Origin: Prasinococcaceae sp. CCMP 1430 | Taxonomy: Eukaryota; Plantae; Prasinodermophyta | Assembly (NCBI GenBank): GCA_013416795.1 | Contig: RQSC01000383.1 | Location: 1 to 12,617, forward strand | Reading direction: 5' to 3' | Length of the DNA: 12,617 nucleotides | In this document: positions 3,126-12,617 of the stretch, piece by piece | Layout of the letters: each line of letters opens with the position of its first letter | How positions within the stretch are numbered: the first letter of the stretch is position 1 | Position numbers and translations under genes: made by a program | The notes under the pieces: model-generated | Told to the model about the DNA's origin: nothing | The model's input: only the letters and a program-made list of their open reading frames with translations | The model's database searches: none

Positions 3126-3301
3126 NNNNNNNNNNNNNNNNNNNNNNNNNNNNNNNNNNNNNNNNNNNNNNNNNNNNNNNNNNNNNNNNNNNNNNNNNNN
3201 NNNNNNNNNNNNNNNNNNNNNNNNNNNNNNNNNNNNNNNNNNNNNNNNNNNNNNNNNNNNNNNNNNNNNNNNNNNNNNNNNNNNNNNNNNNNNNNNNNNN
3301 N
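3126..3301. other. Assembly gap (176 N) covering the DUF1997 5' end and probably the divergent promoter shared with LPA2
   Basis: Run of N, preceded by (GC)n and followed by poly-T and G/T runs that look like low-quality sequence. Confidence 0.97.
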
Positions 3302-3440
3302 NTTTTTTTTTTTTTTGGAGGGTGGAGGCGTGTGTGGGGGGGTTTGGGGGGTTTGGGCCTGCCGCCGCAGCAGGCGGGAAAGCGGCGCCGCGGCGCAGAT
3401 TTAGATTTCGTGCGCGCGGGCAAGCGCTGGGCGTGGAAGG

Positions 3441-9781: not shown

Positions 9782-10198
9782 GCGTGCAAATCTGTGCTGG
9801 AAACTGGGGGCGCGCGCGAGCGCTCCCCCCATGCCACTCCACCCCACCCCAACCCCCTCCGGCCGGACTCTGCAACACACGGTAATATCCACGCTTCTCT
9901 GAGGGCGTTGTATCTTACTCTCGCGTGTGCACATCGCTGCTTCTTCGCTCGTGTCTTGTCGCTGGAGCACGCGCCATGTCAGCGAACGCATGCGTGCGCG
10001 GCTCCACCTCACCTAACGTTGTCGTTCAGTTCTTGCTGGCGTGCTTAGGTACCCACCGACGAATGAGCGTTGGCACTGTTCTACATACTCTACTATGAGC
10101 CTCCTTCGTAGTACTTCAAGTACCAGGTACCAACCTCAAGCTGCAATATTCGGGGGAAAGCGGGGGGGTTCTCCGTGCTTGTGCCTCTCGCTGGTCTA

Positions 10199-10799
10199 CT
10201 ATGCGCATCCCTGTGCGGTGTAGAAGCAAGGCGGATAGCCCTTGCATCTGTCTGGCGTGTTTGGACGGTAGGGGAGGCACGCTGCGTCCGTGGGGGTGTG
10301 CAGAGGGGCGTCGCGTGTCAGTGTTTCGTACGTATGCAATTGCAGCGGAGTCTGGACTTGCTACGGCCTAGCCGTCCCAGCAGAGCGATTCGCGCGCTCA
10401 CGCACAGCCGCAACAGTTGGAGAAGTGATTGCATATCGTGCCTGGCCACAGGCATGTGTTCGACGCCACGACTGAGTGGTGCACCATCGCGCACTCGCCG
10501 TCAATGCACTCGGTGTCACCGCAAAAGGCGCTGTCAGTGGCGTTTGGGTTGAGGTTCATGACGCAGTCCTTGAGCATGCAGCAGTCCGCGGACGTCGTGC
10601 ACTTCCCGTTCAGGGGCATGCAGCCGGACTCGGTAGGGGCGGTAATGCTGTGGTCCCCATTCGAGTCTCCGTTCGAGTCTTCCGCAAGCAGCGCGCGCGC
10701 GGCAAGCGTGGGAGCAGGCACCGCGCACGCCACGATGAGCGCCGCGGCGAGAGAGACGAGAAGGGCGGCGCGGGGGCGTGGCATCATTGTCGCAGCCAT
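10199..10799 (-). CDS. Secreted cysteine-rich protein with two cystine-knot-like domains, 148 aa (exons 10799-10402 and 10247-10199, or the 4-nt-shifted variant 10799-10406 and 10251-10199)
   Basis: ATG in GCG-ATG-G context and a hydrophobic N-terminus (AALLVSLAAALIVACAVPAPTLA). Two C-X6-C-X5-CC repeats. Donors GTGCGT (10405) and GTGAGC (10401), branch CACTGAC at ~10320, acceptors CCAG (10252) and ACAG (10248). The spliced exon adds CKGYPPCFYTAQGCA followed by tandem TAG TAG. Confidence 0.78.
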
Positions 10800-11521: not shown

Positions 11522-12617
11522 CTACGCGGCGACGGCGGCGAGGTCCTCGACGAGCGCGCCTACGCGGCCGAAGTCGTACGTGACGCGCGTGAGGCGCTCC
11601 GACTCGGCCCACAGCCTGGCGGCGTGGGCGTTGTTGCGCGCGGCCGCTGATGGCTCGGCCCATTCGTGCACACCCGGTCGGCCCTTGAGCGCCTGCTCCG
11701 ACATGTACCTACCACTGACGCCCTCGGCTTCGTCGCTGGTCGCCAGGAACATCTGCCCACGCACGCCGCTCTCCACGTCGATCAGGACGCCGGCCGGTTT
11801 GAAGAGCAAATCATAGGCCGGGATGGGCAGATTGCGCGGCAGGGCGGTGTCGACTACCCCTGGGTGGCACGCGTTAGAGGTCACGCCCGAGCCCGCGTCG
11901 GCGAGCTTTCGCGCGAGCTCGTTGCTGAAGAGCACGTTGGCGAGCTTGCTCTGCCCATACGCCGTCCACCCGAGACCACCGTAGCCGAAGGGCCATGCAG
12001 CGCTCTGGAGGTCGTCAAAGTTCATCTTGTGACGGGGAACCGGTGGCGCGCGTCAGCACACCCACAGGCGCGAGCGCGCGCGCACTCAGGCGAGCGCGTG
12101 CACCGCGCAAGTGTACCGCGCGCGCACGCACCACGCCAAACTCGTGCGCCGACGAGGCCACGGTGACTACGCGACAATCCGGCGCCATGGCCTCCAGCAG
12201 CCCTCCGGTCAGGGCGAAGTGGCCGAGATGGTTGGTGCCAAACTGCAGCTCGAAGCCATCCTCGGTCACGCGGCGCGTGGGTGGTGCCATTACGCCTGCG
12301 TTGTTCATCAGCACGCTGACGCCGCGCGCGCCGTACTCGCTCTTGAAAGTGTCGCAGAACTCGGCTATTCCACGCAGGGACGCCAGGTCGCACTGCATGA
12401 ATCGCGCATCGCCACCGGCTGTGACGCCATTCGTCTGAGCTCGCTCGCGCACGGCCGCGGCGGCTTCCTCGCCACGCCCGCTGTCACGACAGGCGAGCAC
12501 CACCTCGAAGCCGCCGCACGCGAGGCGCTCGGCGGCGAGCCGCCCGAGGCCTACGTTAGCTCCCGTAACCACAGCGACGCGCGGCGCAGCCGCCGCCGCC
12601 GCGGCCGCCGAGGCGCC
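11522..12617 (-). CDS. Short-chain dehydrogenase/reductase, retinol-dehydrogenase/WWOX/Tic32-like; 5' end beyond the window (exons >=12617-12132, 12025-11522)
   Basis: VVTGANVGLG (TGxxxGxG), LACRD, CDLASL, NNAGVM, DGFELQFGTNHLGHF, VTVASSAH, catalytic YGQSK and HPGVVDT. Donor GTG|GTGCGT at 12131 and acceptor CACAAG|ATG at 12026 are phase 0 and give HEFGVMNFDDL. GCTGAC branch motif present. Confidence 0.95.

Follow-up and report, generated by a model that had tools for sequence, protein, structure and literature searches.

PRCOL_00004289 of Prasinoderma coloniale: a lineage-restricted gene for a predicted secreted protein with two eight-cysteine, knottin-like modules

The minus strand of the window (the whole stretch of DNA analysed here, 12,617 nucleotides of contig RQSC01000383.1) contains a reading frame that starts with the ATG at 10799 and is unusually rich in cysteine. 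A first-pass annotation had taken its product for an orphan secreted precursor of two tandem, toxin-like cystine-knot domains, the second of them completed only after splicing. What does this gene encode once it is spliced, where else does it occur, and how far do its two modules resemble knottins?

Gene model, locus and transcription

The 90% cluster of the window protein includes an annotated product, PRCOL_00004289-RA of Prasinoderma coloniale (EukProt EP00793; P0014), which is 158 aa long and which the spliced translation of the window matches residue for residue. The window gene is the two-exon nuclear gene PRCOL_00004289 of this species, already annotated and uncharacterised; its parts are listed in Table 1. 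Left unspliced, the frame runs into a TGA at 10398-10400. The expectation that splicing completes the second module was right in that a downstream exon supplies the four missing cysteines, but the 49-53 nt proposed for this exon fall 30-34 nt short of its real size. Candidate exons of 49 and 53 nt are in frame but would yield eight cysteines with X1/X1 loops or only seven; they are not conserved in the paralog described below and disagree with the published gene model.

Table 1. Features of the PRCOL_00004289 locus in the window (precursor residue numbers)
Feature	Position	Strand	Remarks
Predicted signal peptide, residues 1-33	10701..10799	-	Hydropathy profile; conserved in paralog (P0003)
Acidic Cys-free spacer, residues 34-59	10623..10700	-	DSNG-DSNG tandem at 10656-10679
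Module 1, residues 60-103	10491..10622	-	C-X6-C-X5-CC-X4-C-X13-C-X4-C-X4-C
Inter-module linker, residues 104-115	10455..10490	-	12 residues; 8/12 identical in paralog; no basic cleavage site
Module 2, first part	10406..10454	-	Cys116, 123, 129, 130; C-X6-C-X5-CC-G
Coding exon 1	10406..10799	-	394 nt; residues 1-131 and first base of codon 132; donor homologous to L001 donor; product identical to P0014
Intron	10282..10405	-	124 nt, GT..AG, phase 1; GTGCGT ... GCAG
Exon 2, coding part	10199..10281	-	83 nt including TAG at 10199-10201; supplies Cys133, 144, 150, 157
3' untranslated region, approximate end	9979..10198	-	Run X1 contig over 9979-10233; DNA similarity to paralogous locus to ~9923

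We place the splice at 10406^10281 on the strength of its conservation and of the published annotation, which drew on RNA data (PMC7455551). The intron position is common to the window gene, its paralog (P0003) and L001, a paralog-type locus from an ocean metagenome whose intron is likewise in phase 1. The window donor GGCT/GTGCGT (exon 1 end 10406) corresponds to GGCG/GTACGT in L001, and the window acceptor GACGCAG/CG (exon 2 start 10281) to GCATGCAG/CC. The two introns (839-970 in L001) are 71% identical and share the motif CACTGACAC, which resembles a branch point; in the window a branch-point-like CTGAC lies at 10317-10321, and the first AG after it serves as the acceptor. All three reading frames of the intron either contain stops or encode sequence that is not conserved, and the strain variants L003 and L004 preserve the frame of exon 2. 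The spacing after the double cysteine of module 2 is the same in the window protein and in its relative.

Transcription of the gene, which the first-pass annotation had proposed to check, was found in a culture run and in seawater, with no spliced joint among the RNA contigs recovered. In the culture run (X1, which bears the same species label as the runs holding the full stretch), contigs cover 9979-10233 and 10484-10665, that is, parts of the exons and the 3' untranslated region, together with the 3' ends of the neighbouring genes (up to 9903 and from 11418), while the intron and the 5' intergenic region have none. This is the coverage pattern that RNA would give. The contigs from three seawater metatranscriptomes are confined to 10180-10648, and those at 10180-10333, 10303-10453 and 10346-10496 cross the intron borders unspliced, at a depth of 2-5. 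Since the runs had been chosen by genomic k-mers, a procedure that favours unspliced forms, were made from rRNA-depleted total RNA and were available as contigs only, these data show transcription and not the efficiency of splicing. According to the genome paper, 6,996 of the 7,139 gene models of P. coloniale have transcript support (PMC7455551).

The unspliced contigs raise the question of whether the locus is poorly spliced or decaying, its main product being a 133-residue read-through form that has an odd number of cysteines and ends just after the second CC, or the whole gene drifting towards loss. A Cys74Tyr allele in natural populations and some paralog-type contigs that break off within module 2 (P0029, P0031 and P0036) would also suit such a reading. 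However, the frame of exon 2, its four cysteines and their spacing have been kept between the paralogs at a module 2 dS of about 1, whereas the read-through tails are not conserved between the loci; the published gene model is spliced; and unspliced contigs at this depth in total RNA, from runs selected as they were, may contain pre-mRNA or DNA. We therefore regard a failing locus as very improbable and continue with the spliced, 158-residue product.

The neighbours of PRCOL_00004289 in the window are housekeeping genes (SET, SDR, IP5 2-kinase and p24), as had been noticed before. The convergent SET-domain gene, on the plus strand, lies close by: its transcript contigs end at about 9903 and those of PRCOL_00004289, on the minus strand, at about 9979, so that the two 3' ends are tightly packed, with some 75 bases between them (window 9903-9979). 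The SDR gene (11522-12572, minus strand) appears as two overlapping reading frames in different phases (12015-12572 and 11522-12025), whose Pfam matches follow on from each other (profile positions 4-143, then 142-189); this implies that a frameshift or a short intron lies near 12015-12025. Two runs of N, at 744-1142 (399 bases) and 3126-3302 (177 bases), are assembly gaps flanked by GC-rich simple sequence and homopolymer tracts, and they account for the apparent low-GC bins in the composition profile. The identical spliced product marks the window as P. coloniale DNA, and the GC content of 69.8% reported for that genome (PMC7455551) agrees with this.

Precursor architecture and a dispersed paralog

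The predicted precursor begins with a putative signal peptide, which we called from composition and hydropathy. Its n-region has two arginines, its hydrophobic core spans about 17 residues with a Kyte-Doolittle maximum of 2.97, and a cleavage-type motif, PTLA/A, lies near residue 33. The acidic spacer that follows is free of cysteine, as had been claimed, and contains a 12-nt tandem duplication that encodes its DSNG-DSNG repeat. Because it is 12 residues shorter in the paralog, this region seems to change length freely.

The framework given earlier for module 1 is exact, with cysteines at 60, 67, 73, 74, 79, 93, 98 and 103, and so is the description of a 12-residue linker after which module 2 opens with the same C-X6-C-X5-CC spacing. 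The 13-residue loop of module 1 holds an N-glycosylation sequon, N86-A-T (10536-10544), conserved in the paralog, and the mature protein is probably N-glycosylated. Once exon 2 is joined, module 2 also has eight cysteines, in the order C-X6-C-X5-CC-X2-C-X10-C-X5-C-X6-C. The cysteine framework of both modules is no chance pattern, since 16 cysteines fall within 99 residues and all 16 are kept in a paralog that is only 67% identical.

Two further claims found no support. The first was that the precursor is processed into a pair of peptides. No dibasic or other obvious processing site was found anywhere in the protein, and the linker is conserved at 8 of its 12 positions, so that the mature product would most simply be a single chain; without the signal peptide of about 33 residues it would comprise 125 residues, about 13 kDa, with a pI of 4.7. 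The second was that the modules arose by internal duplication: neither BLASTP nor hhalign finds any similarity between them beyond the cysteine framework. The protein thus has a signal peptide followed by at least two tandem disulfide-rich domains in one chain with no dibasic site between them, which defines an architectural class and not a homologous family.

The paralog, PRCOL_00004102-RA (P0003, 149 aa), comes from the same genome annotation. It shares with the window gene all 16 cysteines, the signal peptide, the position of the intron and a similar 3' untranslated region. The dN/dS between the two genes is 0.34 (dS 0.6), a ratio that points to selection. The DNA of L001, which is of the PRCOL_00004102 type, resembles that of the window only over the gene and short flanks, beginning about 80 nt ahead of the ATG and ending about 270 nt beyond the stop codon. 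No flanking gene is shared between L001 and the window, tblastx included, and the two genes are for this reason best described as dispersed paralogs; the extent of the similarity indicates that the duplicated unit was the transcription unit with its intron. Divergence is concentrated in three places. One is in module 1, where only 2 of the 6 residues of loop 1 are identical; the other two are in module 2, namely loop 2 (5 residues in the window protein vs 7 in the paralog, none shared) and the CysV-CysVI loop (4 of 10 identical).

We searched for relatives well beyond this genome. A word-index search returned close variants and PRCOL_00004102-RA only. We ran phmmer exhaustively against 1.84 billion representative proteins, taking the mature paralog as query, and recovered only the protein's own family, with no relatives in other green algae or plants at E up to 0.001. 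A scan of viral contigs found no relatives, and one of the JGI metagenomes gave a single strain variant (L004). Variants of both paralogs, at 98-99% identity, are present in TARA and other ocean assemblies. Searched against Pfam up to E 10, the full protein, the modules and exon 2 gave noise only (NIP_1, Dickkopf_N, Atracotoxin and Toxin_12), in agreement with the earlier statement that no family could be recognised. At the level of sequence the family is therefore restricted to Prasinoderma and to two genes, with one non-syntenic paralog. The label of orphan holds in that no relatives occur outside Prasinoderma, but not in the strict sense, given the paralog and the existing annotation as PRCOL_00004289-RA.

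The environmental contigs also contain variants of both genes. In at least nine of them codon 74 (window 10578-10580) encodes tyrosine, which turns the CC of module 1 into CY; the carriers are P0016 (6 contigs), P0017 (3 contigs) and L002. The presence of this allele in natural populations implies that the module 1 scaffold is not under absolute constraint everywhere. Either the allele is tolerated or defective, or module 1 depends less on its fourth cysteine than a canonical knot would. The metagenome contig L002:1-1541 is of the window type at its 5' side, from the upstream region to the start of module 1, and of the paralog type at its 3' side; the switch lies inside the conserved segment CCMLKDCVMNL, the coverage is 1.9 and the contig ends in unrelated sequence that is rich in AT. 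At this low coverage a chimera is the probable explanation, with gene conversion between the paralogs as a less likely one. Finally, in several environmental contigs of the PRCOL_00004102 type (P0028, P0029, P0031, P0034 and P0036) the reading frame is lost directly after CLWPGT of module 2, and what follows is an unrelated sequence common to them. This pattern suggests that an insertion has recurred, or that a structural variant or a misassembly made more than once is involved.

Fold and function of the two modules

Knottins are defined by a I-IV, II-V, III-VI connectivity in which the third bridge threads the ring (PMC2238874). Both modules show the knottin order of cysteines, C-C-CC-C-C, in the form C-X6-C-X5-CC-X(2 or 4)-C followed by further cysteines. 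As there are eight cysteines in each, the knotted six cannot be assigned from sequence. The resemblance to the inhibitor-cystine-knot (ICK) framework was a central point of the first-pass annotation, and we examined it by profile searches, language-model neighbours and structural models.

Profile searches of the PDB gave knottins for both modules. The top four matches of module 1 are all ICK peptides: delta-theraphotoxin-Hm1b (E 0.006), MK1-3.6.10 (0.026), lambda-MeuTx (0.047) and SGTx1 (0.2). Module 2 has three matches in all, U2-segestritoxin-Sf1a (E 0.027), SOTI-III (0.14) and bidentatide (1.2), which are likewise knottins. All these small-protein matches (E 0.006-1.2) are sub-threshold. 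The language-model neighbours of the mature region and of each module are clusters of ICK toxins, with scores of 0.75-0.82, below the lead threshold of 0.9. Knottin families in Pfam remain far under their cut-offs (Toxin_12, 8.3 vs 21 bits; Atracotoxin, 9.1 vs 25).

Structure prediction started from an alignment of only four sequences, and the confidence of AlphaFold2 was poor: the pLDDT was 57.6 when module 1 was modelled by itself and 49.2 for the paralog with both modules, in which module 2 folded poorly. These predictions differ in secondary structure, and one of them has helices in module 1. When the low-confidence model of the two-module paralog was compared with the PDB by Foldseek, the list was headed by DkTx (the tarantula double-knot toxin), hanatoxin, SGTx1, EETI-II and MCoTI-V, with no match at E up to 0.001 (best E 0.6). 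In VIA-align, the low-confidence model of module 1 superposes on hanatoxin 1 with Z 2.3 and an rmsd of 1.8 Å over 33 of 35 residues, and on SGTx1 with Z 2.2 and 1.7 Å over 31 of 34; the KNOTER3D criterion is an rmsd below 2.5 Å on the cystine-stabilised beta-sheet motif. The signals from the PDB, the language model and the superpositions thus point uniformly to knottins, but none reaches significance, and they are not independent, for all of them largely restate the cysteine spacing. Taken together, sequence and models make a coherent but weak case for a knottin fold. We rate the chance of true cystine knots in both modules as slightly better than even, and no membership of any homologous family is established.

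A secreted, disulfide-rich but non-knotted protein would also account for part of these data. Such a protein, hevein-like or built of some other cysteine repeat, could be a structural component of the thick wall or the colony matrix of Prasinoderma, or could bind carbohydrate there. Hevein domains, too, have an eight-cysteine pattern, C..C..CC..C..C..C..C; the modules have eight cysteines and not six; the AlphaFold models are of low confidence, one of them with helices in module 1; and an acidic, unprocessed and probably N-glycosylated protein suits a matrix component. On the other hand, Pfam up to E 10 gives nothing in chitin-binding, wall or adhesion families. The residues after the CC of module 1 are M-L-K-D, without aromatics where hevein has its sugar-binding triad, so that neither of the two marks of a type 1 chitin-binding domain, the Pfam match and the aromatic triad after CC, is present. 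The weak PDB matches are all to knottins and none to hevein, and two modules in a two-gene family are unlike the expanded repeats of wall proteins. We consider a non-knotted wall or matrix protein rather unlikely, although clearly the most serious of the alternatives weighed here.

A more specific proposal would make module 2 a canonical inhibitor of serine proteases, of the type known from spinach (SOTI-III) and Mirabilis, presenting a basic P1 residue in its CysV-CysVI loop to trypsin-like proteases of grazers, bacteria or viruses. In SOTI-III the inhibitory loop is the ten-residue CysV-CysVI loop, with Arg at P1 (PMC3795654). Module 2 has CC-X2-C-X10-C, its loop carries Lys or Arg at position 4 in all four sequence types while being otherwise variable, and module 2 of the paralog matches SOTI-III at E 0.008 and 0.038. 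That likeness, however, comes from the GAGP..CC.GAC segment, loop 2 of the paralog. Module 2 of the window protein, searched alone, leaves SOTI-III unmatched and finds a single spider toxin at E 6.3; its basic residue stands at position 4 of the loop and not at position 7 as in SOTI-III; and it has two further cysteines that SOTI-III lacks. We judge an inhibitor of this type improbable.

Our preferred explanation, which we hold with moderate confidence as a whole, is that PRCOL_00004289 encodes a secreted, unprocessed, bivalent tandem knottin-like binder. Each module would fold in the knottin (ICK-like) manner with one extra disulfide, which would make eight disulfides in all. As internal processing sites are absent, the protein would be released intact, as a bivalent and very stable extracellular binder. 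Binding would probably fall to the three loops named above in which the paralogs differ most, one in module 1 and two in module 2, while the cysteine scaffold and the other loops would be held constant. The likeliest role might be to act outside the cell, as an inhibitor or a ligand, in defence or in interactions at the cell surface, for instance by blocking a foreign enzyme or receptor; as to function, all of this is pure inference. The protein is probably not a membrane-active cationic peptide, because its pI of 4.7 and the sequon of module 1 make a poor fit to such peptides or to gating-modifier toxins. PRCOL_00004289 is, at any rate, a real, Prasinoderma-restricted gene for a secreted tandem eight-cysteine knottin-like protein, and it is probable that this protein represents the knottin kind in a new lineage.

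Significance and comparison with known systems

The known sources of knottins are animals, land plants, fungi and some viruses. The family list of the KNOTTIN database has no algal family (PMC2238874), and a full-text literature search on knottins in green algae turned up no report of one from an alga. Were the tandem knottin confirmed, the known range of the fold would widen to the earliest-diverging phylum of green plants, and the protein would offer a small scaffold that is bivalent by nature. It would also be a candidate for an effector acting outside the cell in a marine picoalga with a worldwide distribution. If the fold turned out not to be knotted, it would be an ordinary lineage-specific, small cysteine-rich secreted protein.

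A bolder version holds that the two modules are genuine cystine knots and that module 2 has a common ancestor with the trypsin inhibitors and antimicrobial peptides of knottin type found in angiosperms. This would be the first algal bivalent knottin, serving as an extracellular inhibitor against grazers, bacteria or viruses. We see this as a long shot. If it were true, plant knottins would date back to the base of Viridiplantae, since Prasinodermophyta branched off before Chlorophyta and Streptophyta separated (PMC7455551).

The plant systems in question are SOTI-III (PDB 4AOQ/4AOR) and bidentatide, of the KNOTTIN families "Serine protease inhibitor2" and "Plant antimicrobial", which have C-X6-C-X8-CC-X3-C and a ten-residue loop. 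In comparison, the framework of module 2 in the window protein and the paralog is C-X6-C-X5/7-CC-X2-C-X10-C, and the local motif C..G.iC.gagp..CC.GAC.P is present in the paralog; both groups lie within Viridiplantae. The matches are nevertheless marginal (E 0.008-0.14), module 2 of the window protein alone has none, and module 2 has a C-terminal extension with two more cysteines. Common descent is not established, given that phmmer found no relatives in other green algae or plants at E up to 0.001.

With spider and scorpion ICK toxins (hanatoxin 1, SGTx1, delta-theraphotoxin-Hm1b and lambda-MeuTx; Pfam Toxin_12), module 1 shares the spacing C-X6-C-X5-CC-X4-C. Over the first 16 positions, 6 of the 12 non-cysteine residues are identical to those of lambda-MeuTx, including a ..L.g.C.t.ADCC.. 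motif, and the low-confidence model of module 1 superposes on nearly the whole of hanatoxin and SGTx1, at 1.7-1.8 Å. Homology is nonetheless not significant (best E 0.006, with Pfam far below cut-off). In addition, module 1 has a glycosylatable loop of 13 residues and two extra cysteines, and the algal protein is acidic while the toxins are basic and amphipathic; it also comes from an alga, with no venom context.

The closest architectural counterparts are DkTx and the secreted cysteine-rich repeat proteins (SCREPs; PMC6262176). Like the algal precursor, they have two ICK-like modules in tandem behind a signal peptide, and the short linker that connects the modules offers no cleavage site. Chains of DkTx rank first and third in the Foldseek list, but at E 0.6 and 2.9 and with an rmsd above 11 Å, so that the likeness is one of architectural analogy only. 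The modules of DkTx and the SCREPs have six cysteines and those of the algal protein eight, and whereas the two knots of DkTx are recognisable duplicates of each other, the algal modules are unrelated in sequence.
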